A stretch of DNA of 64,000 nt from Ophelia neglecta (taxonomy: Eukaryota). How positions within the stretch are numbered: the first letter of the stretch is position 1; each line of letters starts with the position of its first letter. Below the pieces are notes generated by a model. It did not search any database. It saw nothing but the letters and a program-made list of their open reading frames with translations, and was not told the origin of the DNA. The stretch spans positions 21,142,001-21,206,000 of the forward strand of contig OZ260661.1 of NCBI GenBank assembly GCA_965285935.1, given 5' to 3'. The translations under genes were made by a program, and so were the position numbers. Positions 7,330 through 29,831 of this stretch are shown here, piece after piece.

Positions 7330-8124
7330 AGGACTACAAGGCAAATTTTAGAGAAAATCCCAAATGTCAACCAATCAACCAAGCAAAATCAGAAATAGGC
7401 AAGGTCAGTAAGAAAATATTAGAGAAAATCAATTATTATATAAGAAACAGCTAAAGCTTAACCAATGAAGAACAGCAAATGTTGTAGCATGGTTTAAATC
7501 GCTGGATGATAAAAGGCTATACACGTTTCTGCAATTTGATATAGTGGACTTCTATCAATCAATTTGAAATCAACTGTAAGTTAATTGATTTTGCCTCGCA
7601 AACAAATACATTAACAGATATAGAGAAAGAAACAATTTAACACAATAAAAAAGTCATGTCTTTACAAAATCAGGAGAGGCGTGGGCAAAAAAGACCGGCA
7701 TTTTTTACATAACAATGGGAAGCTTTGATGGTGCAGAAACATGCAAATTGGTAGGATTATACACATTGAGATAAATTCGGCAATGATTTCGGGCTGTACA
7801 GAGATGATGGGCTTGGTGTAAATAGAGCGACACCACAACAAGCTGACCGTATCAAAAAATAATTATGTGAAATATTCAAAAAGTATAGGCTGGGAATAAC
7901 AATAAACGCAAATAAGAGGACTGAAGAATTCCTGGACGCAACACTCAACTTGAATGGCGGCTCATTCATGCCATATGTGAAGCCATACATGTGCCGACAT
8001 ACGTCCACTTCGAAGTCAAATAACCTGAGGGCAATCATCAAGAACATACCTATCGCCATCAACAAGAGATTATCAGAAATGTCCCATGACAGAGAATTAT
8101 TTTAGAAGCCGCACCTGTATACCA
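7330..8124 (+). pseudogene. Penelope-like retroelement, RT part (decayed; Nematis-like, tentative)
   Basis: Fragments FLQFDIVDFY, ITMGSFDGAETCKLVGL, GLYRDDGL, EFLDATLNL and IPIAINKRLS...AAPVYQ, with stops and frameshifts. It continues at 29832. Confidence 0.8.
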
Positions 8125-9039
8125 ACAAGTAGGCCAGCGGGCCCACGGTCTCCCGTCGCTAAATAAATAATTGGCAAAAAAGAAGATGGACAAGAGACGT
8201 ATATTAATGGTTGCGAATCAGTATGAGCCACTGAGGTGATTAATGACTACGGGGTATATGGAAATGATATGTTCAAACTTCACACAAAGGTTCTCCATCA
8301 GCCACGGGTGTGTCTCCTCTGCGTTCAGTTACCCCAAAAGGCACAACTAGGGCCCATGTGGGATGTTCCTGTGAAGTTTGGTCACAATCGGCCCAATAGT
8401 GCGAGTGATATGCTCCAGAAAGCAAACATTGCCAAAATTACACAAATCGGGCTCCTGTTTTGCATAAAAAGTAGGCCAAAGTTCAGTGACCCCAAAAGGA
8501 ACATCTAGGGCCCATGGGGAATGCTCCTGTGCAGTTTGGTCCCAATCGGCCCAGAAGTTTCCGAGATATGCTGTGGAAATGAAGCATTGCCGAAATTGCA
8601 CAAATCTGGTCCTTGTTTTGCCAGAAGAGTAGGCCAAAGTTCAGTTACCCCAAAAGGCACAACTAGGCCCCATGGGGAATGTTCCTGTGAAGTTTGGTCG
8701 TAAGCGGCCCAGTAGTTTCCGAGATATGCTCCGGAAACGAAGCATTGGTGATATTGCACAAATCGGGCCCTATTTTCGCAAGAAAAGTAGGCCAAAGTTC
8801 AGTTACCCCAAAAGGCACAACTAGGGCCCATGGTGAATGCTCCTGTGAAGTTTGGTCCCAATCGGCGCAGTAGTTTCCGAGATATGCTCCGGAAACGAGA
8901 ATGGAACGGACAGACGGACAGACGGACAGACGGTCAGACAGACGCCTGATGCGTGTGGGACTTTCACTTGTGGGACTTTTCATTTTATTTTGTGGGACTT
9001 TTTGAATGTGATCTTACGGTTGTTGCTTGTGGGACATCC

Positions 9040-10330
9040 GAAGAAGTCCCACATGTGGTGCCCATCGATGTAGGTCCCACATGTGATGTCCATCAATAAA
9101 GTCCCATATACGATGTCCATCAATAAAGTCCCACATATGATGCCCATCAATAAAGTCCCACATACAATGTCCACCAATAAAGTCCCACATACGATGTCCG
9201 TCAATAAAGTCCCACATACGATGTCCACCAATAAAGTCCCACATACGATGTCCATCAATAAAGTCCCACATATGATGTCTATCAATAAAGTCCCACATAC
9301 GATGTCCGTCAATAAAGTCCCACATACGATGTCCACCAATAAAGTCCCACATACGATGTCCATCAATAAAGTCCCACATATGATGTCTATCAGTAAAGTC
9401 CCACATGTGATGTCCATTAATAAAGTCCCACATACGATGTCCGTCAATAAAGTCCCACATACGATGTCCACCAATAAATTCCCACATACGATGTCCATCA
9501 ATAAAGTCCCACATATGATGTCTATCAATAAAGTCCCACATACGATGTCCACAAATAAAGCCCCACATACGATGTCCACCAATAAAGTCCCACATACGAT
9601 GTCTACCAATAAAGTCCCACATGTGATGCTCACCAATTAAGTCCCACATAATATGCCCATCAATAAAGTCCCACATAATATGCTCATCAATAAAGTCCCA
9701 CATATGATGTCTATCAATAAAGTCCCACATACGATGTCCACCAATAAAGTCCCACATACGATGTCCACCAATAAAGTCCCACATACGATGTCTACCAATA
9801 AAGTCCCACATGTGATGCTCACCAATTAAGTCCCACATAATATGCTCATCAATAAAGTCCCACATTAGATGCCCATCAATAAAGTCCCACATACGATGTC
9901 CACCAATAAAGTCCCACATACGATGTCCACCAATAAAGTCCCACATACGATGTCTACCAATAAAGTCCCACGTGTGATGCTCACCAATTTAGTCCCACAT
10001 AATATGCCCATCAATAAAGTCCCACATAATATGCCCATCAATAAAGTCCCACATTAGATGCCCATCAATAAAGTCCCACATTAGATGTCAACCAATAAAG
10101 TCCCACATACATGTACGATGTCCACCAATAAAGTCCCACATACGATATCCACCAATAAAGTCCCACATGTGATGCTCACCAATTAAGTCCCACATAATAT
10201 GTCCATCAATAAAGTCCCAGATTCTGTGTCCATCAATATTGTCACAATTTTAATGGCCATAAATGAAGCCCCACATAAATGAATTCCCAACATGTGATGT
10301 CCATCAATATAGTCCCACGCCATGATTATA
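9040..10330. repeat. 21-bp subterminal tandem array (consensus CAATAAAGTCCCACATACGAT-like, about 55 units)
   Basis: Directly visible. Each unit carries AGTCCCAC, the reverse complement of the GTGGGACT motif in the termini. Confidence 0.95.
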
Positions 10331-10991
10331 AAACTATACACACTCAGCAGATACCCTTTGTCATAGATATGACACTGTTGTGTTGTGGGAATATAGCCAA
10401 TTAAATCCAACAACTGTGTTTGATATCCAATTAAGTTTATTTTATAACATCCTTATTTAAAATCAAAATCACACATTTAATAGGTTCAGCAGCAGATGAG
10501 TGGGTTCTCATTAACTTGAATAAACTCAACACCACACCTCTGTTTGGTGGGAAAGCTATAAATCCTCTACTGCTTTATAATACAAAGTACATCAATAAGA
10601 CACAATTAGAAGGTGTAATAACACACCCATTACAAAATATCAACCGCCTGAAAGAGATTGTTAGAGCATAATAAACATATAAAATAATATACGAATTTAG
10701 TTTACAATATATTTGTTTCTTCAAATTTTGTCTGTTTCTTTTCAGTAAATCTGAAAGATTATGTTTCAGAGTATCAAATTCACTTACACTAAATATTTCT
10801 CCTTAAGAAAGATTTAATGGACCAGGAACATACCTTCCTTACCACCTACTGTCTAAATAAAGTGACACATTATAATACTAGATATAACCCTTCGGGGCAG
10901 AGGCAAAATAAACATTTGAAGCAAATTTCAAACCTATTTTAGTGCCTTTAAGTGCCCTCAACCTGTTTCCAGCAGGGCAGGTTAAACCGGT

Positions 10992-13900
10992 TTAAACAAC
11001 CTGGTTTGAACCACCCTTCTGTAAACTTGCCAACCCTGCCCTATTCATATTCGATATTTTCTTGACAATGAGACTACAAGTCCTCCTACACAGTTTTCCC
11101 CCTTTGTCTTTACTTTGACTCAAAGCCTTCAAACACAACTGCTTGGAAGGACATGTTCTGGTCCTAAGACATTCACTGAAATATAGGTGAACCTCCTCCA
11201 TCTCCTTCTTGTCCCAAGGGACTCTCTTGGCTTTAACCTTTATTTTCTGTACTTCAGTAACATTTTTATCCTGGACATCATCATCATCTTCAGTCATGGC
11301 ATTCAAGTATGACAAATTGCCAATGTCATCATCCATGATGGGTGGGGAATCACTGATACTGGAAGGAAGGGATAGTGGGTCCAAACCTGGATCAACTTCT
11401 GTACCTACTTCTTCGCGCAGTCTCTTCAAAACCAGTTCTACAAAGAGATGACAATATAACATATTAACTAACACAACTTGCAATAAACAAGCAGGCTGTG
11501 AATTGCTCAGGGAGGCCACATGTAATAAATATTAGTGATAAAACATTACAGAAAAATGCATTATTACTTATGTAAATAATAATGGGATTTGTTTGAAATA
11601 AATACCCTCTGTATAAACCTAATCCGATTTTTGTAATCTTTTGTTAATAAAAAAATTCAATATTGTATGATTGCAAAAAGAGCACTGCCACGGCTCTTGA
11701 CTTCCTAGCAACAAACTTATGAGGGCTGAGGAAACCACCCTTAGGCACCAACAAGACTGGCAATTGGTCAAAGAGAACAACTGTGACATATATAAAGCAA
11801 ACATGTAAATATCTTTAATAAGACCAAAAAACAAATCTTATCAGTCATTAATTTTTCCATATTCCCCAATGTCATTGATGCATGTTTACAGGGCACAATT
11901 GAAATTATTTAAATCCCCAGTGTCTTGGGCAAAGCTACAAATATTGTAACACCCATGATAAGTCAATTTGATCAAAATATTTGTTGCTTCTAAGCTTCGA
12001 AGATAAACATTCTATTATCAAACCAAAGTTGCGTTCAGTAATCACTTACCATTCACCTTGACCTTGTTTAATTTTTCTCCTTGAAATTCCTTCGTCAGGT
12101 TGAGGTCTTCAACCAGCATAATTTTTGCGATTTCACATCTCTCCACTAAGCCACTCATCTGGCGATAGTGCGCCAAATGCACATCCTTTGAATGACCTAG
12201 GTGATCACACAAACATTGTAACTGCTGATCATTAAGGTCCAGTACCTAGAAAACAAAATATTCCTATTTTTATCAGATAATTATTAAAAAATATACTATG
12301 AAGCTTTCAGTCCCTGGAATTGTATGTAAAAGTATTGTCCCATATGTAGAGTCCATAAAATAGAATGTTTGGAAGTACAAAAAGTCTCATAATAGGTGTC
12401 CAAAAATAAGGTCCCACAAACAAATAAAAAAGTGTGTATCATAAAGAAAGTCCCACAAAATTAGGTCCCATAAAAAAAGTGTTCATTATATAGTTAGTCC
12501 CAATAGTAGAGAGTCCCAGAAATTGAGTCCAAAATTGAGGCAACATAAATAACAAGTGTCCATAATCTACTATTAAAGTCCCATGAGAAATAAGTCCCAG
12601 AAAGTGTGACACAAAATAATAAAGACCCAACATTACAGTGTCCATGATATTGAAGATCCCACAAATATACTAAGTCCCCAAAGTAGACTGCGAAACTAAT
12701 TTTTTTTTATAAATTCCCTTCATTACAGATTAAGGGAACTGTACTCAACTTATTGTGGTACAAGCATTACCAGAAAAACCAACTACAAAATTCCTCCCTG
12801 AAGTCATAAATAGTATTGATACCTCAATAAATAATGTAGGAAACAAACCTGGGAGAGGGTGGCTGTGTATTTTCGAAAGGAAACACTAGTCATTTTCTGT
12901 GGGCATTTGAGGTCTGTGCCGGAGCACACTGCTTTCACGGATTCGTAGCTTCTTGCACTGCAACGACCTACAAAGGAAATGAAAAAAATAAGGGGGGTGA
13001 ACTCTTCCCTCCAGCTCTGCTTCAGGATCTATTTCCCTACTTACTGCGACTGCTTGTGGGCATTTGCTGTTTGCAGACAATTTTAAATTGAATATGGAAT
13101 AGTTCTTGTTTGTATTAATATTGTACCTTTGCTAGGAAATAGCCAATTAGTTTCTGGGTATCCCATCCTCTTGCGCATTGTCGGATTAGATATTTCAAAC
13201 AAAGCATCCTTGGTATCTGCAGGAATCAGCACAGGCACAGGGCGACCTCTCTGAAATGGTTTAACACAACTCTTCACATATGATCATAAAGCGTGCTGAA
13301 ATAGAGGCCCCCTTCACTTTTATATCCTAAGATGTTTATTTTAACACAATTCAAAGTTATATTCTGGTATGCTGTGGTAGAAATTAGTCACTCGGGGCAT
13401 GCATCAGACACAAATATTACTAAGGTTCGCATATACTGTAGCAAGGGAAATTCTCAACGGAAGAAATATTGCAATTATTTATATTTTACACCTTACATAC
13501 AGATTGCCCATGCCTTGCCTGATGTGAAGGGTTCTATTAAAATGGGCAGCTTGAAAAATTAATATGACAAAAACAAACCTTTCCTCTGACAGTCATCATA
13601 TCCTGTCCTTCTATAAGGAATTTTTCCAATTCTGTTAGTTCTGCTACCAAAGATTTGTCGAAGTCAGACAAGCCTGTGGATCTTTCTGAATACTGCTTCA
13701 AACTACAAACAAATAATACTTAATAACCATACTAAAAATATTAATCATAATAATTATGAAGGTATTAAATTAGAAGATCCCACCAAAAATAAAGGCAAAC
13801 AAATAATAAGTGTCCATAATATTGAAAGTCCCACAAGAATAGTCCCACAAAATAAGGTCCCATAAGGAGTGTCCATAATATAGCAAGTCCCACAAGTAGA

Positions 13901-16900
13901 AAGTTACAGAAAATGCTCTTGGCAAATAATGCATTGAAATAGGACAATAATGCTTGACACCTCTGAACTGAGTAATTCTCATTTTTGTTGCTGCCAAGAG
14001 TGTATCGTCTGCAATTTACATTTACTTTTAGTTCACTTGCTTATTAAATATTGTGGCTTTTATCTATGATCAGAGCACCAGGCGATTTGAATTGCATGCA
14101 CCTCACAAAAGTAAGTGGTAGTAAGCATTTCTGCCAGTCTGTCAGTTTGACCTTGAAAAATGGGTCACAGAAAGGCTTTCAAATCGTCAGTTTGGCCTTG
14201 AAACATAGGTCACTATTTGGCTTCCAAATCACGTTTGGTCAATATTTCTACATGATGGTACAATTATCATAATTGTAATATGAAAATGTAATTATTATCA
14301 ACTGAGAGGAAATACTTGACTTACGTTATCTGATCTATTTCTCCTGCCCTTCTCTTGTTGTACAGAAGTAACCGTGTCTGAACTAGTTGGATCGCCATAC
14401 GGAATTCAGTGTCGTTGATGTTCTCCCATTCCATTTTTTTCAACTCTTTCATTACATGGAGAGTCAACTTCTCTACATCTTCAGGCGAAGGAACAGGTGA
14501 TTCTTTGTTGAATGTTCTGGTTGTCAGTATGTACCGGGCATGCCGAGTCACTCGTTCCCCCCACTCTATTTTCATCAGACGAGTGAATACATCACATTGT
14601 GTGGCCTGATTTTCATCCACCCCTGACTTGCACTTTTGGATCAAAGCCCATTTCAGGTTAAGTAGTGCCAGGATATCATACTTCAACCGTAGCACATTAG
14701 ATGGTGATTTCAAGTCTTCAATGTCATCCATGTAAGGGTATGCACACATAATAGTACCATCAACTACTTTATCAAAGAAATGAGGTACGAGGAAGTCCCA
14801 CATGGTTTTTGATGCATTTGAAGTAGACACATTAGCAGCGCCTTGGACATCTGTGTCCTCACCATCTAACTGTCGAATATTGCTCAGCAGTCGGGCCATC
14901 AATCGCATATGTTGCGAGGCATAATGCTTTGCCTTAACATTGCCGATGCTTCGCCTATACCATGACTCCCCTAAGGCCACTATAAGCACATCCTCCTTTG
15001 CTGTTTTGGACACTGCATCCCTGGTCATTATTGTGAAAACATTTTCAAGTAGTCCTTCTGATGGTTTAACTTTCAGTCTGCCACTTATTATGTCTGATTT
15101 GACCAGAAGCCCCCGCTTTGTTTGTGATTTTGGCTTTGTGCTTGTCGGCTTTGTGTGTGTGGGCGTTTTTCTTGTGGGCTTTGTCCCAGATATGCTCTGG
15201 ATGGAACCTAATGTGTTGTTAACATCGGCTGCAATATTGTCAAGGTCAGGTTTTTCGGTGCACTTTTTCTCGTGCCTCTGTATGGTGAATTCAAGCATCC
15301 ACTCAAAGCAGTGTGGACAGGGACACACATCTTTCTGGTTGAAAAACTTCTTTGGTCTTCGGCCAACAAGAAGTTCACCCTTCCCTCGACTAATAACTTG
15401 TACATTGTGGTCATGATCTCCTTTTCTTCTTAAGGCATTGAAATCTCCCAAAACAACTCCGGGTTCTGCCTTATGCACCCTTTTGAGATGTGGCTGAATG
15501 TGCAAAAATAACTTGCCGCAGTAACAGCATGCATGCTTGCTGTTGTAAACTCTATCACCTTTCTTCTTTGGTTGCTTACTGTGTCCAGTAGACTTTAATA
15601 TTTTCCTAATGAATACTTCTGGATTGTCAGCGGCTCTCAAAATGGTACTTTCATCAACCCAAACATCATCAGACATCTGAGAAGGAGAGTCATGGGTTTG
15701 TGTGGGAGATGTTGTATGTGGTGAGTTAGTTGACTGTTGTTTTGCTGCTGATCCTGGTGAGCCATCAAGAGTACTTTCATCAAGTCCAACATCATCAGAC
15801 ATCTGAGAAGGAGAGTCATGGGTTTGTGTGGGAGATGGTGTATGTGGTGAGTTAGTTGACTGTTGTTTTGCTGCTGATCCTGGTGAGCCAGTGAGGGGAG
15901 AAGATAGTGGTAACACAACTGGTGATGTGAACTCTACAGACTTTGAACGAGGAGTTAATGTTGATAATGGTGTGCTTTTTGAAGTCAATCTTCTTGTGGG
16001 GGAAACTTCTGGTGATGAGGATCCTAAAGATGAAGATCTTCCTGAACCAGACAAGGAGCTTCCTAAACAGGTAGCTAGAAAGCAAAATTCATGAAGAGTG
16101 ACATTTGATTTTCATTTGCACAAGGCGATTTCATTTTCCAGTCTACTTCTTTTATTCAAACAGAATAACCTCTTTGATGATGTACCATGGTCTTATGACA
16201 TAGCTTTCTATACTGTAAATACAATATTTCTTGGTGAATATGTAGAATAAAATCTGATTAATTATTTACTCTCAACAGATGCAAAAAATTAAAATGAGTT
16301 CTGCTAATGCAGAACAGGCAATGATTCGAGTAGTCTTCAAAAATCTTTGATAGGAAAAAAATGCATTTACACAGTTACTGGGATTGAATTTCCAATCAAA
16401 ATTCACTTCCTGCCACAGATTTCCAAATAAAATTCATGTATATTACATGCTGATACGAGAACCATTTCAGAGTTGGCAAAACCCCGGAGAAAATTACCAA
16501 ATCCACTAGTCAAACACGAGACAACACAATTGAATATTGTGTTTGAATAAACTGCCCCGTCCATCGTGGTGCAAAGCTACATTGGTGGATCCGAATCCGA
16601 TCTGAATCTATCTATTTCACTACTCGTAAATATCGGAAAATACCTATTCAAGTCACATCATGGCTGGTATATTGCAAGCAATGCATGGAGGATTCGAATA
16701 ACAGTGAAAGAATAGAGTATTAAGTACGTCAACCTGGTCCATTGATTTGTATATTTACTGAGGAAATAGATTTTTGCTTCAATACTGACTTCGAAACTAC
16801 AGTCTGTATTTTGCCACTCCTTGGCTCCGCCCAGTGTCCCACGTAGATGGCTAGCTCTAAAATTTGAATCATAAAAATCTGCCTGACGAGTAAAATTTCT

Positions 16901-19900
16901 TATCTAACCAGGTACAAAATACAAGTTTACTTACACGTATTATGTCTTTTAGGTGGCTTGTATTCATCTTCACTGTCCTCTTGTGATGAAATCTCTGATG
17001 AGCTCTCCTGCGTAGGCCTCCCCCTTTAAAATAAAATTTGAAAATTGATAGAACAGCTAGAATGAGAAATTTTGAGAGATTTATTGATAGGAAAAATTAC
17101 TTATTGAGGAGTTTAAAGTACTTAAAAGGCATGATGCAACAGTCACATTAACCATCTATTTTGGGGTCTGATAAAATATCTTTGAATTATTCAGGACAAA
17201 TAATGCACTCAATTCATATTTAATGGAGACTATAAACAAACCTCAGTCTTGAACTGCTCAGTGAAGGTAGTAACGGAATCACTGGTGAAACTGGTTGTGA
17301 AGACGGTACATAATCGCTCTCATCAGAGGAAACTGCAAACAAAAAATGAATTTCTTAAATAAATTTCTTGTCCCCTCAACACTGTAGGTTTAATAGCAAC
17401 ATCAATTCTGTTCCAAAACAACCAGTGGCACATTTCTCAGAGTGGGACTTACAATTAAATATTCATTCTGTGACTAGTCTTTCCAATGAACACATTGAAC
17501 TGTATTTCAAATAGCTACCATTTTAGAGGGCCAAAACCATGGCGACTAATAACCTTAATGTTTAAGGACAAGCTTTTTAGATAAATATTGCTAGGAGTCC
17601 GTGCAAATCCTTGTATATAAAATTAGCCTAACATCTACCAAGTAGCACTGTTAAATTGCACAAGGATTCTATAACTGTAACAACGACTTTTTTCTCTGAA
17701 ACACACCAATTTGTTCTGTAGTAGACAGTGGATCCACATCATGGTCCATGGTCTGGTTGTTGGGACTGGCCCCACTGCATCCTACACAAAAGAGATTATT
17801 CATCAATGCATTATCAATGTTTTGAATTAATAAAGTACCAAGTAGCACTGTTACATTGCACAAGGATTCTATAACTGTAACAATTGATTTTTTTCTCTGA
17901 AACACACCAATTTGTTCTGTAGTAGACAGTGGATCCACATCATGGTCCATGGTCTGGTTGTTGGGACTGGCCCCACTGCATCCTACACAAAAGAGATTAT
18001 TCATCAATGCATTATCAATGTTTTGAATTGATAAAGTAGTTTCACAAGACATATCTAACTAGGCTACTATTATGAGAAGTACAGGCCTATCTTATATAAG
18101 AGCCAGGCCAGTGTCATAAAGGAAAATTTCATAAGGGCTAGGTAGGCCTGGTCTTCAAGTTATAAAATATGTTCCTTAATTTGAGTATGTTAAATTCAAA
18201 TGAAACTGCCTTCTTATAATCACCTGATTCACCTTTTTCTGCCAATGCTTCACAATGTCCGAAATCAGCAAGAAACTTCTCCATGTGAGTAGATTTCATT
18301 TTCCTCAAATGTGCTGGAACAGAGATATAATTGGAAATGAAGATAATTATATCATCTGGAAATCAACAAGGTTTAATGTTGTACAATGTCTATATGCAGT
18401 GCTGTCACCTCCTTGCTAGCAGGCTGTACTAAGATTGTTACATCATCTCCGACTGACCCTACTCTCCTCTGATTTATTAAAAGGTAATGCAAAGGAACAC
18501 GTTTCGTATGACCTCTCTTGGGGATATTTAATGTCTTTAGCCATGTATATATATAGCTTTAACAACTAACAGTAAAATCAGTAGGGTACAAAAGTAGTGA
18601 GTCACTTATCATGTGAAATTGTTAGCAAAGTGTCAGTATTTGTGTATGTGGAGAATAAAAGTTAACTTATTTCTCATCCTTCGGGGTCAACCCCTGGAGT
18701 ACTTTAGGCCAGTCTTAAAATTATTCTTGTTGCGGGTAAGGGGCCCCAAAAAATCCATAAGGTAGGTAGTAGATAATTTTTTAATGAGTGGGTTGGCAAC
18801 ACTATAAATTTACAGCAAGTATTCACGTAGGAAGAAGTGAGAATTGCGGCTTTGCTTACAGGAAGCGGAAATAAGATCAAGAGTTAGTCTAACTGCATTT
18901 CCGTTTTCCCAACCTGTGGGCCGAACAAGCCTAGCCATTTGTTGACTGGTAGACTCGGTATTGTCAAAATCACATCCTTTATAGGACAATTTGAGCCCAA
19001 AAAAAGGTTTTTCGGAACCAGTAAAAATTATGTTTGTGCGGGGGGTTTAGGCACCATACAGCCGGGTTACCGGCAACGAGAACATTTTAAGACAGGCTGT
19101 ATACAATACAGGCATTACAACCATCTTAGCCGAACTGGTTTTGACTCGGCGTAGCACATAGCTATTGCATCGTCCGGTTGTGACGGAACAATGTAAACTT
19201 ATTGTATAATAAACTGGAAAACAAAAGGTCAAGTTAGCTGTAATAATCAATTGTGTTAGTCTGACAATCTAGATTACCGATTCCTTCATCTCTCTGGGCA
19301 AGATTGCTTCTTGCAACAAAGCTTCTCACCCTTGTGCTAGTCCTTACTTCTTCCCTGTATGTACATTTAATATCAGATGATACATGGAGGCCTAAGTGTT
19401 TTTCCATTTACAAGTAGGGAGCGGGAAGGGATAACCTATTCAAAACTCAAGAGGAGGGAGGTCAAAACAACCACACAGAATCAATGGTCAAATAATACAG
19501 AATTTAAGGGATGACATGGCCGTCCTAGGTTAAAGACTTAAATTCTTAATTTGAGTGCTCATTTCCCTTTCTGATTTAAAAGTCGGGGTTAGTTTCTGAA
19601 TTGTCATAAGGGCCTTCAGGCATGAGCATTCAGTATAGCCAAAATAATTATCTGCGTGGCACGTGATTCAATATTCTCTAATGTGGAGACTAGACTGAGT
19701 CGCCATGGCAAATTGTGATATCAGGCTTCATTCATGTGGCCGAAGCCAAGCAAATCTAAACTGTCAATTGATCTCTGCCAATTACTGATGCGTCTGAATG
19801 CTTACATCCAGCGGCCCCTAATTTTGTCAGCATGTAACTGGAAAAAAAGCATTTCTTTTTTAGGACTTCACATGTTTCCAGTATTGAATTACAATTGGTG

Positions 19901-20839
19901 ACGGGAAGGGCAAAAAAGTTTTTATTGCCAAAAACCCAACCCATGTTGTCCTGCTGCCAGCAATTTACCATAAACTTCAAACTAGTTTCAACACTGAGCT
20001 TGTTTACGGTTAAATCACTCCACATAAAACACAGAATATATATTTTGTTATGAGTGGTGTACTGAATAAGGTACAAATTATACTTACACACAATTTTCAT
20101 TGAAGAACCCAACAAACATACTGTTATCATTGACTCCGATAACTTTAGCAGGCCACCACACATTGTTGCCTGTCAGCTTCAACCAAATGGGCTCATCAAG
20201 ATTGTACTGGTCTGAAAATTGAAGATACTTTTTGGTTAGGTGCTTCATAAAAGGCAGAAATAAACTGCACATTCACAACTCAACTGAAGTACTTCCAAAT
20301 ATAGTACATATTGATGACAATCTCACCATCATTGCAGCTAAATACATGTAAATGTGTCTTATTTTATTGTTTTGGCTGATTAAATAATAAATGTCTACCA
20401 GGAATATCTGTGATCGGTTTTACTTACTTTGAATTTGCACTTAACTTAAACACTGTTACTCAATGTAAGTAGACTATTAACCCTGCGATTCATGAAAAAA
20501 AGGTTTTGGTGTTCCAGAATATGATATACACTTATCAGAATTTCACAAGAATCAAATCAGTTCTTTCTCTCAGTGAGGTCTATGGCTGTGTCAATTTTAA
20601 GAAAGATGTATGAAATGGTTTTTGAGGTATCGTGTTAACGACTAAAATCTTCAGCGGGTATGGCGGTGGCGGCTCAATAGATTCCATAATATACGCATTT
20701 CACAGATATTCACGCATAGAAGTATGGTGTATCAACGGAGAAAAAGTGATTCAAATTCATGAAACTTACATGGGTCTAGATGCTTGCTTTTAGGTGCAAG
20801 GCCTTGGCCTGCACCCCTTCTTCGCCTTTTTCTTGGCAT
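10992..20839 (-). CDS. 14-exon tyrosine recombinase (~1149 aa) with N-terminal PWWP/Tudor-like domain, Zn fingers and C-terminal Myb-like helix bundle
   Basis: Hand-spliced exons: 20770-20839, 20088-20211, 19278-19354, 18224-18313, 17908-17982, 17707-17781, 17242-17332, 16935-17023, 14325-16074, 13579-13702, 13127-13250, 12849-12967, 12050-12245, 10992-11437. All are GT-AG and phase-compatible, totalling 3450 nt. YR motifs are LLYNKRRAGE, VRGK-RGRPVPVL, TSVSFRKYTAT and CDHLGHSKDVHLAHYR. The PWWP-like segment is PIWLKLTGNNVWWPAKVIG...MFVGFF. Confidence 0.8.
12330..12690. repeat. Intronic degenerate AAGTCCCA/GTGTCCAT repeat cluster (related cluster at 13770-13900)
   Basis: Repeated AAGTCCC(A) and AGTGTCCATA motifs, inverted relative to the 21060-21550 cluster. 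Confidence 0.7.
17630..18040. repeat. 201-bp tandem duplication containing a 75-nt symmetric exon
   Basis: Two near-identical copies, each holding a phase 1-1 exon GCSGASPNNQTMDHDVDPLSTTEQI. Confidence 0.9.
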
Positions 20840-21770: not shown

Positions 21771-22853
21771 TTACTTTTTTTTTTCAGGTTAATAATAAAG
21801 TAAACTAGTTTCACTTATTCGACCACATATGAACCCAATGATAATGCAAAATAACCTCAACTATTCTTTACTGGGTTAATAATAAAGTCAACTATATAGT
21901 TAACTCATCACACTCCATATGAAATCAATAATAAGGCAAATGTTATTTTTTTCAACTAATAATAATAATCAGAATTTTACCAGAATCAAACTAGTTCTTC
22001 CTCTCAATAAGGTCTATGGCTGTGTCAAATTTATGAAAGATGTATGAGATGGTTTTTGAGTTATCATGTTAATGAGCACAGGACAAGTGGCCCCTGCAAG
22101 TTACATGCCTGTATTTTGTGTGAATAAAGATACCATGTCCTATAGTCTCTGGGGATGGCCCAGTAAATAAGAATTTTTTGTAAGGTTTGAAACAGGTACT
22201 GCATTATTGCAAATAAGTCTTAATCTTTTGTGGTGGTTGTCATTGGTGAACACCTTTTTCGGAACAGTAGAACCCTTGAATTTCACCTGACCGACAGGCA
22301 GATGTAAGTTATCACTTGCCCATGTGTACTTTTTACTCCTACAAAGTAAATAGAACATACTTACTGCCAGACCCTGTTCAGTGTGCCAGTTATTTTGTGG
22401 GACTTGGTTGTGGTTGAACTTTCTATATTATGGACACATTTATTTGTGGGGCCTTTGCTTTGGACACATTTTCTGATGCATAGTCCTGCATTCGATGTGG
22501 GCGATAAACAGAGAAGGAAGAAGCAAATTCGGACCTTGTACCATAGCTGCACTCGTTTTAACACAGTCACGGAGGGGCGAAATACGCCGCTTAAAATTGT
22601 CGGCGGACTTTAAACAGATCGAGTGAATCAGCCATGCGCCCGCCCGCTGGCGTGTGAAACGAGCGGGCCTATGTTTTTTGTATATTAAATAAACCAGTTT
22701 ACTACATATTTTATTTGTTCTTCAAAGTTTAATTGTTCGATCAATTAATGAGACCGCAGTACATATCAGTCAGTTAATCTGATTAACAGTAGATTTTTGT
22801 TCATGTGCTCCGATCCTACCGGGGACCCACCATGCACCAGCCTGTACATGGAC

Positions 22854-23374
22854 CAATGCCAGTCAACTCGGCCCTCTTCAAGCTCGGCCCCCTTCAAGCT
22901 CGGCCCCCTGCATACTCGGCCCCCTGCATACCTGCCTACTACTACAAAGTCGGCGCTTACAAATGTTTGTGCTATCAATGTTCGTAATATACATGCCTCT
23001 TGCTGCCTACCAATATAATAACTCTATTTATATCAACTCGCAGAAATATTGCTTCATTTTCCCCGATGGGCAATAAAAAGGTGCCGTTGACACATGGCGG
23101 CCTTCCTTTTGTCAGCAAACCATCATGCATGCATTTGTCAGTTTACCATGATTTTGAAATGTTATTTCCAGATTTTGATGTTAACGGCACCTATTATCGC
23201 CCATCGGGGAAAACGAAGCATTGATTCTGTGAATTGATATAAATAGAGTAATTATATAGGTATGGCAAGAGAGAGGCATGCATATTAAGAACATTCAACC
23301 AATAAACATGTGTAGGGGCCGACTTTGTAGTAGTAGGGGGCCGAGCTTGAAGGGGGCCGAGTTGACCTGTTACC
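22854..23374. mobile_element. MITE with ~200-bp imperfect inverted arms and an 8-bp TSD (Mutator-like, tentative)
   Basis: TSD ACATGGAC at 22846-22853 and 23375-23382. Arms read GTCAACTCGGCCC... / ...GGGCCGAGTTGAC. Confidence 0.8.
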
Positions 23375-24055
23375 ACATGGACGAACTGAAAATGGTGCTT
23401 GCAACCGGAAGTATACTTGTGGGACTTGGGAAAATCGTTTTTTCTTGGCTCTTTTTCTTGTAAAACATTTTAATAGCTAATCATGGAAAAGTTTGTTGTT
23501 GAATTAACTTTTCAAGATATCATTTGTTTTTGCTTTGGATTCTCTTGATTTGTGCACATTTTAGGGCGAAAACTTTATCCGGAAATCAGCGAACGTCGCG
23601 AACTTAGCATGTACCTACTGGATTGAACTATCTATAGATCTACCTCGAAACTTCTGCAAAATGTAATGAAAAGATATGTGTTAGGGCTGGAACAACCAAA
23701 CCAGTGGTTCCAGGTTAGGGTGCTCAATAAACAAATCGAACCCACTTGGATTTTACGACATAAGCCTAATTGTGACATTTGTTTATGTATATCGCTCAAA
23801 CTCGAACTGTCAAACTCGTTCACGGCAGACGGGAGGGATTTTTGTGGGACTTTTTGCACGTGTACGTGTATTATTAAAGAATCGAAATATTCCTATATGA
23901 AACCTAACATAACATCTACAGATTAATCATTTAGTCTAATTAATGGATGAACAGCAAGCAGGCACCAGATCTGCGAATATCGCCCGTCCTAGTCAGCCTA
24001 CATATTATGTTTAACGTGACTGTCAAATGTCGCAGACCTGGAGCACCTGGCCAAT

Positions 24056-24494
24056 TGTAGTAATGTAGGTAACGTCGTGGGTATAAGGTATTTCGAACGA
24101 CTTTATTCGGCTATATACAGGTGGAGATACATGTAGTATGATACAATATAATCTGCAAACAAATAAAATAAAACTTAATGTAAAATAAAAGTACAAATAA
24201 GGGGAATGAAGCAAACGTTTCTTAACGACAAGCATGCCGAAAATTATAAGACTCCGTGCTACATACATGCAGAAAATATAATACTTCATGCTCCATAATT
24301 TATATAAGTAAACAAATGAATAATCTTACCCAGTGAGGGACGGGATTAAATGTAACTTGACATAGTCGAGCCAGGCCAGGTACACACACGAGGAAGGAGG
24401 AATTGCAATCCAACGGGGATCTAATTCACTACATACATGTACGTGTGTCCTGTTCAGCTACCAGGTAAGTTATACCTTTACATTCGAAGCAGCC
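24056..24494 (-). mobile_element. Inverted partial Gypsy LTR (3' part) retaining a 177-bp GT-AG intron (24153-24329)
   Basis: 24056-24152 is the reverse complement of 29143-29239, and 24330-24494 is the reverse complement of 28978-29142; both look identical by eye. The insert reads GTAAG...TTTGTTTGCAG on the minus strand. Confidence 0.9.
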
Positions 24495-24524
24495 AATGGG
24501 CTATCAATCCCGTACGCTGGTATT

Positions 24525-27500
24525 GTGACACTTGATATTCGGGTGGGCAATGTTATTTTTCCGGATCAGGTATTTTTTCTGGAGGATGACACAAAGTTAT
24601 CCCCTGATGGACCAGGTGTGACTATCGGGTGCAATATTTTCAGACAAATGGCTAGACAGGAAGGGCTTGATTTTACCAATTTACCACCTCTATGGCAGAC
24701 CTTTGTTTCCCTGTTTGCCGAAGAAACTACCCCTGCTAGATCTAGTCTTGTCAGAGTCGGCTTTGAACCAGAGTTGATCCCTGCAAATTGTATGAGAGTG
24801 GTTCAAGGTCGTACTCGATCTTTTCCTAAGGGAAGAAAAACTCAGGGTTTAGTACAAGCCACTAGTGGTAATTATGGTTGTTTGCCACGGAACATAATAG
24901 TGATTAACTCCTTGACCAACATAGAAAAACAGAATGCAGCTGTTAGAGTTATTAATCTTAGTGATCAGGATATTTGGCTTCCAGCAAGATCAGTTATTGG
25001 TATCCTATACACTGATGCCACAGTACTAAATCCTGATAATGTAGAAGTCTCTGTCACAGATGACGTAATAGACGTGTCTGTTCGTAGGGTCAATGTAGAT
25101 TCCCCCACCGTCGCTAGTGTGATCTCCACCGAGTCGGACCGGCCTGAATGGCTGAAGGAGATTAAACTCAATGATTCCCTTGATATTGATCAGAGATTGA
25201 AGGTGCTCAATCTTCTAAATGATAATAAGGATATTTTTTCTCACGAAGGTGACCTACTTTCCCAGACACACAAGGTCACTCACGAAATACATCTTAGTGA
25301 TGACAAACCTGTCAAGTTACCTCATAGGCGAATTCCCCCTCACCTCATCCCTGAGGTGAAAGAACATATCGATGGGTTGTTGAAATCAAAGATCATCAGA
25401 CCCAGCTCAAGTCCCTATGCGTCCCCGGTTGTTTTGGTTAGAAAAAAGGACCAAAGTTTACGTTTATGTGTCGACTACAGACTTTTAAATGCCAAGACAA
25501 TCAAAGACGCATTCCCCTTACCGCGAATAGATGAAGTTTTAGAAACTTTAAAAGACTCTAAATTTTTCACTACACTTGATTTAAGTCAGGGTTACCATCA
25601 GGTACCAATGGCCCCTGGTGATATACACAAGACTGCTTTTCGTGTCGGTACTGGCAACCTCTACGAATATTTGCGAATGCCCTTTGGATTAGCCAATAGC
25701 CCCGCCACATTTTCAAGGCTTATGGAGGCTTGCTTTCATGACCAAAATTTTGAGATTCTTATTTTCTTTCTTGATGACATTTTGATCTATTCCAAAGACT
25801 TTGAGTCTCAGATTGATAGACTGCAAGTGGTTTTCGACATTCTTCGAAAAAACAACCTCAAATTGAAACTGAAAAAATGCAATTTTTTCCAAGAGGAGGC
25901 TCATTACTTGGGGCATTTGGTAAAGAATTCTGGTATTCAGCCCGACCCAAGCAAAATCAGCGTGATCAAGGATTGGCCTACCCCCCAGACAGAGGAACAA
26001 GTGCGCAGTTTTATAGGCTTGGTAGGCTTCTATCGTAAATTCGTGAAGTCCTTCGCCTCTATTGCTAAACCACTACACTCCCTCTTAGGTAAGGCCCCTC
26101 GAAAAAAAGGTTGGAAAAAGACTGAAACTCCATTGACTGGTGCTTTCAAACCCAGGTGGACCCCTGAGTGTGAAATAGCATTTAACACACTGAAAGAAAG
26201 ATTGTGCTCCGCCCCAGTCCTTGGATATCCAGATTTTTCCAAACCTTTTATCCTTGAAACTGATGCGAGTTTTTCTGGCCTGGGCGCAATTCTTAGCCAG
26301 GACCAGGAAATTGGCCGTGTCGTGATTGCGTATGCGTCTCGCTCACTAAAACCAGCTGAGCGGGACGATCACAATTACAGCTCCATGAAATTGGAGTTAC
26401 TTGCCTTGAAATGGGCAGTAACTGAAAAGTTCAGGGATTACCTGATTGGATGTCCCCACTTTTCTGTGTTTACAGACAACAATCCTCTCAGTTACCTTAA
26501 AACGGCTAAATTAGGTGCCGCAGAATCCCGGTGGGCTGCCCAACTAGGGCAGTTTAACTTTGATATCTTTTTCAAAAGTGGAAAGTCTAACGCCAATGCT
26601 GATGCATTAAGTCGTGTTCCTCGACAAGTCAGCGAATCACACATTGATGCCATTTTAGATGAATTGAATGATAGTACAAAGATTCCTATATCAGTTCAGA
26701 AATCTATTGTAGAATCTGTCCCCACTATCCCCTTTACGTGGCCCAGTGAATACTCTGCTGATGATCTCCAAGAGGCTCAGAGAGTTGACCCTTGTATTTC
26801 ACGTGTGTGCCATTTATTGGATGGAAAACACAAACCTACTAAGCGACAGTTATCCAAAGAAACTATGGATGTTCGTCGCTTATGTTCAAAATGGGAACAC
26901 TTCAAAGTACATGACAATCTCTTATTCAGAGTGGTATGCCTTAATGGCATAGAGACTTATCAGTTTGTCGTCCCCATGCCTATGCGAAAATACATATTGT
27001 CACTCTCACATGACCGCGCTGGACATCAGGGAGTAGAGCGTACATTTTCCCTCCTTAGAAAGAGGTGCTTTTGGGTGAGAATGTACAGCGATATTACCAG
27101 ATATTGTTCGATGTGTCAGCGTTGTATGATCGCAAAGGCAGGAAACACAAATCCCACAATTTCAAGTCTTGTTGCTAGAAAACCTTTAGAAATACTAGCG
27201 ATTGATTTCACCTTGATAGACAAATCCTCCAATGGTTTGGAAAATGTTCTAGTGATCACCGATGTCTTCACTAAATTCACAATAGCTATTCCATGTAAAA
27301 ATCAAAAAGCCAACACAGTGGCCAAAGTTTTAATTCGGGAATGGTTCCAACATTACGGGATTCCTAAACGTCTCCATTCCGACCAAGGTCGTAGCTTTGA
27401 AGGTCATGTTATAAAGGAACTGTGTGACTTATACAAAATAAAGAAGACTAAAACAACCCCGTATCACCCGGAAGGAAACGGTCAAACGGAACGGTTTAAC

Positions 27501-28508
27501 AGAACTTTACACGATCTGTTGAAATCCATTCCCCGTGAAGATAAGAAAAGATGGCCCAAATTATTGCCTGAGTTGACATATATTTACAATGCCACTCCGC
27601 ATAAATCTACAGGTCTTTCCCCCTTCTATCTGATGTTTGGCCGTGACCCTGTGTTGCCACTAGACATGGTGCTTGGTTCCCTAGGCCCCAGTGATTCCCT
27701 GGATCCGCACCCGAAACCTTCCTCACAGAGTGTTTCCGATGTGGACCCATGGCTCACAGAGCACCAAACAAATCTCCAGTATGCATATGAGCATGCTGCT
27801 TTAGGCACAGAAAAGCGTGCTGCTCAAAGGAGAGCCCTATACAACTCCCGACCTGGAGTAGATGACAAGCCCATCCCTGTTGGTGGTAGGGTTTTTTTGC
27901 GTAACAGGCCACTAGGCCGCAACAAAATACAAGATAGATGGTCTGATGTCCCTTATGTTGTCATAAGAAAACCCGACACTAACGTCTATACTGTAATCCC
28001 TGCCTCAGGCGAGGGAGAAGCAAAGAATGTGTCTCGGTCATCACTTCTTGATGCCCGTCCTTATTATAAGGGAAACCCTTGTTCTGAGTCGGTGGAGTCC
28101 CCATCCCCTCCAACTAACCTTCACCCGGTTAAGTCGAGGCATGGACACTCCTCTGACGATGAAAGTGACAGTGAAAATGAAGTTTCTTGGCATGAAGTGC
28201 ATGTTCCTACTGACTTCACCTCCGTGATACACCCCCCGGCAACAGAGGTCATAGAAACTAGCAAAAGTCATGAACCAGAAACTGTTATTCTAAGGCAAAA
28301 TCCTGAGCATGTACCTATTCCTAATGTGGAGGTTAGTCTGCCGACAGTTATTGTTGAACCACCTGCCACTGGAATTGCTACAGGTAATAATAACCAGATG
28401 CCTCGTAGATCGTCGAGAAGCAATCTGGGAGTACATAGTAATCCACACAATTTGCCTCGATCAGCAGTTGCATCTAGAAACTGGATAAGTTCTGAAATTT
28501 ATGTTTAA
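24525..28508 (+). CDS. Gypsy/Ty3 pol (C-terminal half of protease, RT, RNase H, integrase); gag and the protease active site are missing
   Basis: Open for 1327 aa. Motifs: SPYASPVVLVRKKD, LRLCVDYR, MPFGL, FLDD, ETDAS, LELLALKWAV, zinc-binding H-H-C-C (HDRAGH...CSMC), IDF, SDQG, GQTERFNRTL. The upstream frame reads EAANGLSIPYAG. Confidence 0.95.
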   Translation: MTLDIRVGNVIFPDQVFFLEDDTKLSPDGPGVTIGCNIFRQMARQEGLDFTNLPPLWQTFVSLFAEETTPARSSLVRVGFEPELIPANCMRVVQGRTRSFPKGRKTQGLVQATSGNYGCLPRNIIVINSLTNIEKQNAAVRVINLSDQDIWLPARSVIGILYTDATVLNPDNVEVSVTDDVIDVSVRRVNVDSPTVASVISTESDRPEWLKEIKLNDSLDIDQRLKVLNLLNDNKDIFSHEGDLLSQTHKVTHEIHLSDDKPVKLPHRRIPPHLIPEVKEHIDGLLKSKIIRPSSSPYASPVVLVRKKDQSLRLCVDYRLLNAKTIKDAFPLPRIDEVLETLKDSKFFTTLDLSQGYHQVPMAPGDIHKTAFRVGTGNLYEYLRMPFGLANSPATFSRLMEACFHDQNFEILIFFLDDILIYSKDFESQIDRLQVVFDILRKNNLKLKLKKCNFFQEEAHYLGHLVKNSGIQPDPSKISVIKDWPTPQTEEQVRSFIGLVGFYRKFVKSFASIAKPLHSLLGKAPRKKGWKKTETPLTGAFKPRWTPECEIAFNTLKERLCSAPVLGYPDFSKPFILETDASFSGLGAILSQDQEIGRVVIAYASRSLKPAERDDHNYSSMKLELLALKWAVTEKFRDYLIGCPHFSVFTDNNPLSYLKTAKLGAAESRWAAQLGQFNFDIFFKSGKSNANADALSRVPRQVSESHIDAILDELNDSTKIPISVQKSIVESVPTIPFTWPSEYSADDLQEAQRVDPCISRVCHLLDGKHKPTKRQLSKETMDVRRLCSKWEHFKVHDNLLFRVVCLNGIETYQFVVPMPMRKYILSLSHDRAGHQGVERTFSLLRKRCFWVRMYSDITRYCSMCQRCMIAKAGNTNPTISSLVARKPLEILAIDFTLIDKSSNGLENVLVITDVFTKFTIAIPCKNQKANTVAKVLIREWFQHYGIPKRLHSDQGRSFEGHVIKELCDLYKIKKTKTTPYHPEGNGQTERFNRTLHDLLKSIPREDKKRWPKLLPELTYIYNATPHKSTGLSPFYLMFGRDPVLPLDMVLGSLGPSDSLDPHPKPSSQSVSDVDPWLTEHQTNLQYAYEHAALGTEKRAAQRRALYNSRPGVDDKPIPVGGRVFLRNRPLGRNKIQDRWSDVPYVVIRKPDTNVYTVIPASGEGEAKNVSRSSLLDARPYYKGNPCSESVESPSPPTNLHPVKSRHGHSSDDESDSENEVSWHEVHVPTDFTSVIHPPATEVIETSKSHEPETVILRQNPEHVPIPNVEVSLPTVIVEPPATGIATGNNNQMPRRSSRSNLGVHSNPHNLPRSAVASRNWISSEIYV

Positions 28509-28843
28509 TTTGGTGTGTAAAATTGAAAATCCTAGGTATTGTACAATTTATGTTACTTATTGATTATTCGAGTAAGATTATTTGCATTCTAGTGTAATTA
28601 ATTAATTCTTGAATCATGTGTATACAGAGTCAACTAGACACTTCAGTGACTAAATTGCGACTTCGTCGTTAAGGCCTAAAACTAATGTAATTTGGATCCT
28701 TGTAAATATTATTTTGCCCATATAATTGAGCCATGTATTTTGGTATGAATTGTAATTGTAATATTCTGCACAATATTCATGTTTTTAAAAAAAAGTCTTC
28801 AGCATATTAATTATGAGGACATAATTTTTTAACCAGGGGAGTG

Positions 28844-29239
28844 TGTAGGCAGGTAAATCGCCCGCCTATTAGTTTTCTTTCACATCGCTAGGTGGTCTTA
28901 TTCCCGCCTTCAATAATTACCTTTGTTAGTCTGACATTCCCGCTAGGTGTCACTTAGCCATATGCTTCCCAAGCGCGGGCTGCTTCGAATGTAAAGGTAT
29001 AACTTACCTGGTAGCTGAACAGGACACACGTACATGTATGTAGTGAATTAGATCCCCGTTGGATTGCAATTCCTCCTTCCTCGTGTGTGTACCTGGCCTG
29101 GCTCGACTATGTCAAGTTACATTTAATCCCGTCCCTCACTGGATTATATTGTATCATACTACATGTATCTCCACCTGTATATAGCCGAATAAAGTCGTTC
29201 GAAATACCTTATACCCACGACGTTACCTACATTACTACA
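28844..29239 (+). mobile_element. Gypsy 3' LTR (intron-less form)
   Basis: Preceded by a purine tract AACCAGGGGAGTG. Ends are TGTAG...CTACA, with AATAAA at ~29189. Confidence 0.9.
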
Positions 29240-29379
29240 CAAGGGAAAGCACCACCATATAATATTATATAATTGTTCATTAGTTTGTAATTTTATAAAA
29301 GTTATAGTCGACAGCTGATAAAATGTGATTACCACTGAGAGGATTACTGATGGAACCACTTAAAAAATGACAGCTAACT

Positions 29380-29520
29380 TACCGTTTCCAAAGGCCAGCA
29401 GTGTTGTCCGGACACAGGATTCAGGCAGGAAGGCAAACAAATTGGCGGAATCATCACGTGAACGCATGAACAAATGTGATTGGTGGGGCATGGCATGGTA
29501 TGCTCAGTGATTGGCTGTTT
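29380..29520 (-). promoter_or_regulatory. Candidate promoter and first non-coding exon of the Crypton gene
   Basis: Two CCAAT boxes on the minus strand (GATTGG at ~29478 and ~29509), TCACGTGA at 29454-29461 and a GTAAG donor at ~29382, all near the element end. Confidence 0.3.
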
Positions 29521-29831
29521 GATTCCTATGGTGTAGACCTAAGTTATTTCAATTGGAACCAGCAGGTGGCGTCTGATACCAGTCATGTCCATGCCATGGA
29601 CACATTTTGTCCCAGAAACTGTCCAAATTTTTTGTGGGACTTCATCTCTCAAATTGTTTGGACTAGCTTCTGGGACTAAAATAAAGTGTCCATGTGATTT
29701 TGTATCTGGGACTATTTTTAAGTCCCACGAACCCAAAAAAGTCTCACGCGCATCAGTCGTAAAGACGGACAGACGGACGGACAGGGCCATTACTATGTCT
29801 CCCTTCCGCCGCTCCGCGGCGACGGGAGACA

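Follow-up and report, generated by a model that had tools for sequence, protein, structure and literature searches.

The question raised by this locus is which enzyme placed a 20.8-kb insertion inside the microsatellite of another, abundant repeat, and which letters at the junctions belong to the insertion and which to its target. The locus lies in a 64,000-nucleotide stretch of Ophelia neglecta DNA (GCA_965285935.1, contig OZ260661.1), which is here called the window and corresponds to C1:21142001-21206000 of the 762-Mb assembly. The insertion is probably a Crypton-like transposon that carries a tyrosine recombinase (YR) gene, targets microsatellites, and represents a group undescribed in the literature searched, although this group may be the same as an undescribed Repbase group such as CryptonV. 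A preliminary description of the same DNA had proposed that the insertion is a YR element with att-like recombination sites, and that it uses the microsatellite of abundant HINE repeats as a landing pad. The kind of element and its target are borne out by the genome-wide comparison presented here, while the proposed geometry of the junction requires a shift of four nucleotides.

The mobile element spans 8940-29762 (20.8 kb) and has a 4-bp RGAC repeat on both sides. Its ends consist of the following parts:

8936-8939, + strand: left copy of the 4-bp direct repeat, AGAC here and RGAC in the family
8940-8964, + strand: left terminus, 2 nt (AG) followed by a 23-bp arm running from ACGCCTGATGCG to the GTGGGACTTT motif
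29738-29762, - strand: right terminus, a 23-bp arm (29738-29760; its reverse complement begins ACGACTGATGCG) followed by 2 nt AA
29763-29766, + strand: right copy of the 4-bp direct repeat, AGAC

The window reads CAGAC (8935-8939), AGACG (8940-8944), and CCTGATGCGTGTGGGACTTT (8945-8964) across the left junction, and the AAAGTCTCACGCGCATCAGTCGTAA stretch (29738-29762), AGACG (29763-29767), and GACAG (29768-29772) across the right junction, exactly the letters that had been quoted for it before. The two arms, ACGCCTGATGCGTGTGGGACTTT (8942-8964) and the reverse complement of 29738-29760, are identical at 20 of 23 positions, an agreement with a chance of ~7e-10 at fixed positions, and no further match to the arm with five or fewer mismatches occurs elsewhere in the 64-kb window. 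An internal copy of the terminal site, of the kind that forms the internal complementary region of DIRS-like elements, was sought in the window and not found.

Searches of the whole genome recovered five left ends and three right ends, all with the same termini, and a degenerate search with the terminal 19-mer found that only these eight ends exceed background. The 103 bases from 8941 are 99-100% identical in the five left ends, and the final 206 bases before the right boundary are present in three copies with 96-100% identity. Besides the window copy, these ends belong to two more complete copies (C1:19.45 Mb, ~25.7 kb; C3:1.32 Mb, ~41 kb) and to a pair of left ends on C8 that has been rearranged. 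At both boundaries the homology with three other copies breaks off, so the ends are real, and the other copies share them. The outermost letters vary slightly: the left end reads TG-ACGCCTGATGCG in the four other left ends and AG-ACGCC in the window copy, and the right end reads CATCAGTCGT-AA in the window and C1 copies and TTCGT-AA in the C3 copy. The flanking 4-mers on the left and right are AGAC/AGAC in the window, GGAC/GGAC in the C3 copy, and GGAC/AGAC in the C1 copy (agreement of 4/4, 4/4, and 3/4 letters, respectively), and GGAC also stands directly outside the first C8 left end. This 4-bp repeat could be either a crossover sequence, as proposed below, or a target duplication. The second C8 left end (C8:1332923-1333500) is joined to internal element sequence (window ~10093-10549) with only TG in common, which places the edge of element-specific sequence at or just outside ACGCC; the arrangement itself could be an insertion of one element into another or an aberrant recombination product.

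The sequence interrupted by the element is a repeat of the HINE type, of which the two parts remain recognizable in the window:

8121-8935, + strand: left part of the interrupted HINE-type repeat, with 158-bp tandem units at 8323-8898 and a (GGACAGAC)n microsatellite from 8906
29767-29836, + strand: rest of the HINE microsatellite with its flank, the tract running to 29785, followed by an inverted-repeat tail, with the end of the repeat near 29836

To the left of the element, 3.6 units of the 158-bp tandem repeat are followed by a (ACGGACAG)n tract, and to the right the tract passes into a tail of 50 bp that contains an inverted repeat. The genome has at least 173 candidate copies of this tail, with matches ending at query position ~64-65. 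Six uninterrupted copies of the repeat consist of the tandem unit, (GGACAGAC)n, GGACGGACAGG, and the same tail, which agrees with the earlier expectation that the empty site is a clean (GACA/GACG)n tract, and the flanks of the window copy, when joined through a single AGAC, give the same alternating GGAC-AGAC pattern as these six empty copies. The layout of 158-bp units, microsatellite, inverted-repeat tail, and at least 173 candidate copies is the one by which HINEs are described. Cg_HINE elements, which are non-autonomous Helentrons of oysters, have central repeats of 140-180 bp and a (GTCY)n microsatellite beside an inverted-repeat flank (PMC7492417). The interrupted repeat resembles Cg_HINE and the pearl elements in its tandem units, microsatellite, inverted-repeat flank, and high copy number, a likeness of layout.

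The preference for this target extends beyond the window. Tracts of (RGAC) with three or more units make up ~0.06% of 212 kb sampled, yet three of the four independent insertion sites in this genome adjoin such a tract, a proportion far from chance. The C3 copy is inserted in another copy of the same HINE-type repeat as the window copy, and the first C8 left end adjoins a related tract, GGAGGGACGGAC. Homology between the window and C3 flanks is limited to the HINE (8121-8940 and 29766-29832), the loci differ in their count of 158-bp units, and identity is lower in the flanks (93%) than in the elements (97-99%), so that the two copies represent separate insertions. Together with single ends at three loci from other organisms (L050, L049, and L065, described below), these sites uphold the proposal that the element lands in the microsatellite of abundant HINEs. 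The insertions also share an orientation: in the window, C3, L050, and L049, the tandem repeats lie toward the element end that is 3' of the gene and the tail toward the end that is 5' of it, and this fixed orientation in four HINE cases fits an asymmetric crossover sequence.

The enzyme probably responsible is encoded within the element by a multi-exon gene on the minus strand, in which the following parts were located:

11037-20272, - strand: multi-exon YR gene, found by tblastn with bivalve and Lottia homologues and by the fold of a homologue
20087-20272, - strand: PWWP-like N-terminus, matching the N-termini of five family members
14303-16054, - strand: zinc fingers and core-binding domain, up to the RRAGE box (by homology)
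13579-13719 and 13131-13283, - strand: two further YR blocks (by homology)
12834-12986, - strand: block with the SFRKYTAT box (by homology)
12045-12245, - strand: block with the LGHS..H...YR box (by homology)
11037-11333, - strand: Myb-like tail (by homology)

The exons were searched singly rather than joined, and the fold was taken from a database homologue, P0032 of Lottia, to which the window exons align. Homologues of the 577-codon open frame at 14321-16054 (minus strand) are present in many bivalves. Pfam scans of the exons and of full-length homologues found no recombinase family, the large open frame being without any match; a sequence search of the PDB with the YR also found none, DUF3504 (PF12012) was not matched by any of 24 family members at expect values (E) up to 1, and a single weak match to Phage_integrase (E 0.038) was found among the same 24. 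It was the fold search that settled the identity of the protein as a YR. The AlphaFold2 model of P0032, built from a 24-sequence alignment, has a mean predicted local distance difference test score (pLDDT) of 73 and is well ordered over residues 80-490, and its top PDB matches are all YRs (XerA, XerH, Tn1549 Int, IntI, XerD, Cre, and lambda Int), with probability 1.0, E 1e-4, and 350-420 aligned columns that cover both domains. By this modeled fold, the gene encodes a two-domain tyrosine recombinase. Conserved boxes (RRxGE, VRGK, SxRKYxAT, and LGHxxxxHxxxYR, with an invariant tyrosine) supply the residues R (RRAGE), K (VRGK), R (SFRKY), H (LGHS), and Y (HYR), which are conserved in the 24 members and readable in the window exons. 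The other open stretches of the core contain no DDE or other transposase-like domain, and the only reverse transcriptase (RT) and integrase in the span of the element belong to a nested Gypsy element that is absent from the other copies. The YR is thus the only recombinase in the ~15-kb core, which, together with the fold and the 20/23 arms, is consistent with the earlier classification as a YR element with inverted end sites.

Protein matches place the YR family in bivalves, Lottia, a nemertean, Priapulus, a sea urchin, a sea cucumber, and fishes. The named records carry labels such as uncharacterised or hypothetical, or an unrelated automatic name, and none is labeled as a recombinase; since the family is also missed by Pfam, it is overlooked in genome annotations. 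The stretch 18141-20272 had been considered as a second gene, an assignment that was dropped because its PWWP-like block matches the N-termini of the family proteins and is therefore read as the first exon of the YR gene. Several further observations concern this gene family. Within the large coding exon, a 126-bp duplication (96% identical, 15645-15890) repeats a segment rich in Ser, Pro, and Thr. The same exon has more than 60 matches in the genome at 27-48% identity, many with long open frames, which represent diverse paralogous families. Outside the element, weak matches to the catalytic part of the YR (E 0.07-0.4) lie at 35341-35484 (+ strand) and 36070-36208 (- strand), and local microsatellites nearby contain TGAC units in GGACGGACTGACGAAC tracts. 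Additional annotated domains occur in some family members (SET, PF00856, and BRCT, PF00533; P0057 and P0059 of cichlid fishes, P0045 of Pecten), and these could be fusions, domesticated copies, or artefacts of gene models.

A mechanism that would account for these features begins with the YR synapsing both ends of the element and joining them, presumably in a circular intermediate. Because the RGAC repeat is found across the copies, the joined ends would consist of the two 23-bp inverted arms across an asymmetric 8-bp spacer, AA-RGAC-TG, giving a candidate core site of ~54 bp; YR spacers are usually 6-8 bp long (PMC3212892). This core site would then recombine, at predicted cleavage positions, with an RGAC in a (GGAC/AGAC)n tract, leaving RGAC on both sides of the insert. 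Suitable tracts would be supplied in large numbers by HINE-type Helentron derivatives, so that the element would land mainly inside another transposon.

The preliminary description had fused the ends differently, through the AGACG present at both junctions of the window copy. Its circle junction, ...CAGTCG-TAAAGA-CGCCTG..., has a 6-bp spacer, TAAAGA, and exchange would take place within the shared AGACG. The general idea of inverted arms around a short asymmetric spacer, if the ends are joined, agrees with the present analysis, while the AGACG fusion and its spacer apply to the window copy only. All five letters are shared in that copy, but the other four left ends, which lie in different flanks, read TGACG, so that in the same register only four of five letters are shared in the C3 copy and three of five in the C1 copy, and the T would have to come from four different targets. 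A register four nucleotides further out gives AGAC/AGAC, GGAC/GGAC, and GGAC/AGAC, and leaves an empty site that keeps the alternating GGAC-AGAC, whereas the empty site implied by the AGACG fusion contains AGAC-AGAC, which is seen in none of the six empty copies. With arms at their full 23 bp, the AGACG fusion would also leave a spacer of only 4 bp. TGACG-like units do occur in some HINE microsatellites (L044; window ~36070-36208); nevertheless, exchange within AGACG is quite unlikely. The two geometries would differ in a recognizable way, the junction ...GTCGTAAAGACGCC... being 4 nt shorter than ...CGT-AA-RGAC-TG-ACG.... The earlier interpretation is therefore partly supported, being right in kind and off by four nucleotides in geometry.

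Several points weigh against the interpretation of the element as a Crypton-like YR transposon that passes through joined ends. The region of apparent exchange is 4 bp, which is short for a YR (usually 6-8 bp), and RGAC is flanked on either side by letters of the element type, for which an 8-bp heteroduplex offers no simple explanation. The C1 copy lies at a single GGAC rather than in a microsatellite, the second C8 left end lacks RGAC, and the window copy deviates at 8940, with A in place of T. In the protein, the family lacks a conserved histidine in the H-x-x-R box, at the position three residues ahead of the second arginine. Two homologue loci (L051 and L052) showed no such ends within reach. 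The divergence of the copies (2-3%) and the elements nested in them leave current activity unsupported. Three public runs (contigs from one sample), aligned with 29237-30400, yielded short contigs, other copies, and loose ends derived from HINEs; no circle junction, excision footprint, or empty allele was seen in these one-sample contigs, which are uninformative for ends 20.8 kb apart. Additionally, inverted ends, subterminal repeats, and a short (4-bp) flanking repeat are typical of cut-and-paste DDE transposons, and the main rival to mobilization by the YR is accordingly a transposon with terminal inverted repeats that depends for its movement on a DDE transposase encoded elsewhere and acting in trans; RGAC would then be a 4-bp target-site duplication left by staggered cuts, and the YR would be cargo or a resolvase. 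The Tec elements of ciliates offer a parallel for a YR in such a role. A Crypton gene rides in the mariner-type element MarCry-1_FO (PMC3212892), and a sesarmid nimavirus reaches (AT)n microsatellites by means of a Ginger2-type DDE enzyme (PMC10871703). Arguing against a DDE transposase are the absence of a DDE domain from the core, the fact that all ends in the genome belong to YR-bearing copies, with no swarm of short derivatives, and the recurrence of this type of end and of the RGAC target together with the YR gene in elements of Lottia and of the Mytilus type that have different subterminal motifs. The flanking repeat is fixed in length at 4 bp and its sequence is always RGAC, which fits either a very specific transposase or a crossover site, and its orientation is fixed as well; on balance, movement by a DDE transposase appears unlikely.

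Alternatively, the YR could integrate the element without a free excised circle, through a copy-out or replicative route or by direct attack on the target, and this would explain a gain in copy number. Cryptons of Chlamydomonas both excise cleanly and gain copies, for which the authors invoke a "complex mode of transposition" (PMC9977147), and the C8 left end joined to internal element sequence is the kind of aberrant product that such enzymes make. Since the same junctions are predicted with or without a circle, nothing separates the two routes, and we consider the one without a circle decidedly unlikely. The near-identical sequence directly outside both ends of the window and C3 copies could also suggest that a single insertion was copied by segmental duplication rather than that the same target was chosen repeatedly. 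The limits of the homology at the HINE borders, the differing numbers of 158-bp units, and the lower identity of the flanks (93%, against 97-99% for the element) contradict this explanation, as do the unrelated flanks of the C1 and C8 copies and the presence of the same target beside elements of other species, and it is extremely improbable. Integration by the element's own YR, through joined ends that recombine with an RGAC, remains the preferred explanation.

The element also contains a distinctive set of repeated motifs, most of which form an array close to the left end:

9044-10311, - strand: array of ~44 units of 27 bp with the GTGGGACT motif, opposite in direction to the terminal copies at 8955, 8970, and 8992

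Every one of the 55 GTGGGACT copies counted in the 64-kb window falls within the core of the element, with none in the nested Gypsy element or outside. Three point inward at the left end, ~40 are inverted in the 27-bp array, and the remaining copies are found in YR introns, upstream of the gene, and near the right end. The units of the array are probable accessory protein-binding sites, judging from this distribution. The subterminal motif is specific to each family (GTGGCT in mussel-type elements), and the inner terminal letters (ACG-NN-TGAT-R-C) align across families, including those of mollusc relatives, which suggests that the catalytic part of the YR acts on a conserved core site and that the zinc-finger or Myb-like parts may bind family-specific 8-mers. 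A second motif, TGGACAC/ATGGACA, is also enriched in the core (19 of 26 TGGACAC copies within 15.6 of 64 kb); it fills a 250-bp array in the L050 element (L050:7001-8170) as well, and may be a cross-family site.

Loci in other organisms were reached through protein homologues of the YR, and three of them show a similar arrangement of ends. One is L050, a mussel-like metagenome contig, where TTCACGCTCTGATAC is directly adjoined by a (TCCG/TCTG)n tract beside a hairpin-tailed repeat; repeated GTGGCT motifs come next, and the opposite end of the contig holds inverted copies of them. The Mytilus galloprovincialis locus (L065) has its end 10 kb past the 3' end of the gene, with a (GGAC/GAAC)n tract adjoining it, six copies of GTGGCT in it, and a 2.3-kb GTGGCT array in the reverse direction immediately inside. 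At the Lottia locus (L049), 162-bp tandem repeats and GGACGGACGGACCGACGGAC adjoin GC-ACGTTTGATAC at 1.5 kb past the stop of the gene, with a 40-bp array just inside the end. RGAC adjoins the single ends in L050 and L049, and the combination of terminal motif copies with an inverted array close to the end that is 3' of the gene recurs in the Mytilus and Lottia elements. A further locus (L062) contains only long (AGAC)n tracts. In two independent metagenome contigs (L063:2353-2504 and L064:1016-1167), a HINE-type flank and an (AGAC/GGAC)n tract lie 130 bp upstream of the large YR exon; the terminal core motif is absent, and in these cases the copy could be truncated or a HINE could have entered the element. 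A pattern search of the genome for a microsatellite next to the terminal core gave three candidates, none of which was counted as support: two have subterminal repeats but no YR gene or opposite end within 30 kb, and the third looked like a chance occurrence.

These relatives allow a broader proposal, which we put forward tentatively and as somewhat short of an even chance, namely that the element belongs to an unrecognised superfamily of YR transposons across animal phyla, with a modular att-like site that combines a conserved inner core (ACG-NN-TGAT-R-C arms on both sides of an RGAC-centred spacer) with family-specific accessory 8-mers, and, in molluscs, oriented homing to the RGAC microsatellite of HINEs. 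By protein matches, such a superfamily may include molluscs, a nemertean, a priapulid, echinoderms, and fishes. If this is true, one transposon uses another as a safe landing pad, and the group would provide a natural eukaryotic site-specific integrase with a defined short target.

Comparison of the copies with the window shows a common core of ~15 kb and a divergence among copies of ~1-3%. Nested insertions and deletions differ from copy to copy, which indicates that the copies are independent. In the window, the nested insertions, which are peculiar to this copy, are as follows:

22827-23375, strand not set: small nested inverted-repeat insertion, absent from the C1 copy and outside the core element
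24047-29237, + strand: nested Ty3/Gypsy-type retroelement (RT, RNase H, and integrase), absent from the C1 and C3 copies

The edges of the Gypsy-type element consist of inverted rather than direct repeats at 24056-24494 and 28978-29239 (173 nt at 98% and 98 nt at 100%, with the order of the blocks swapped), which is unusual for an element of the long terminal repeat type. A 201-bp tandem repeat inside the element (17636-18038) has 2 units in the window and ~6-7 in the C1 copy.

Eukaryotic transposons that encode only a YR, the Cryptons, are poorly understood, and their ends are hard to define. To our knowledge, only one Crypton family has been seen moving. In the element described here, both ends, the ~54-bp candidate core site, the candidate accessory sites, and a short, abundant, and oriented target can all be read from the sequence, the same design is present in other molluscan elements, and the mechanism is directly testable. 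The YR family itself is widespread in animals, and the location of one mobile element inside the microsatellite of another is a form of niche targeting that parallels the YR-bearing endogenous nimaviruses, which home to microsatellites (PMC10871703).

Among known systems, Cryptons (Goodwin et al. 2003; Kojima and Jurka 2011, PMC3212892; the active CryptonF-1_cRei, PMC9977147) are similar in having a YR as the only enzyme and no reverse transcriptase, as well as a direct repeat of 4-6 bp at both ends (PMC3212892) that represents the target sequence, here RGAC. The proposed route is also alike, since a Crypton integrates when a short sequence at its terminus recombines with a nearly identical one in the target, a process seen live with CACCG/CAYCG in Chlamydomonas (PMC9977147). 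However, according to their published descriptions, Cryptons have no terminal inverted repeats, and animal Cryptons no terminal repeats of any kind (PMC3212892; PMC13465315), whereas the element here has 23-bp inverted ends, arrays of subterminal motifs, a 15-kb core, and a strong preference for microsatellites. It also differs from animal CryptonA elements, whose YRs are similar to DUF3504 at E 8e-12 or less (PMC3212892), in that its YR has no DUF3504 match. The YR retrotransposons (DIRS, PAT, and Ngaro) carry RT and RNase H, which are not part of the core element here and occur only in the nested Gypsy element. The YRs of crustacean nimaviruses (PMC10871703) are likewise encoded by multi-exon genes, have N-terminal zinc fingers, and belong to large mobile DNA whose specific insertion sites are a microsatellite of the host (the telomere repeat) or ribosomal DNA (rDNA), a likeness drawn from these features rather than from a comparison of YR sequences; these viruses differ in their 200-580-kb genomes, arthropod hosts, and (TAACC)n or 28S rDNA targets. 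Bacterial elements of the lambda-Int and Tn916/Tn1549 types share imperfect inverted core sites across a short circle spacer and arm-type accessory sites, and the fold search places the protein nearest to Xer, Tn1549 Int, and lambda Int, but the gene here has introns and eukaryotic additions (PWWP-like, zinc-finger, and Myb-like), exchange seems confined to 4 bp, and the element targets a repeated 4-mer in place of a unique attB. Fungal Starships, mobilized by a captain YR (DUF3435), likewise consist of large YR-mobilised DNA, in some cases bounded by terminal inverted repeats and by short direct repeats mirroring the target; they differ in being restricted to filamentous fungi, in belonging to another YR family (the protein here has no such Pfam match), and in carrying cargo genes over tens to hundreds of kb.

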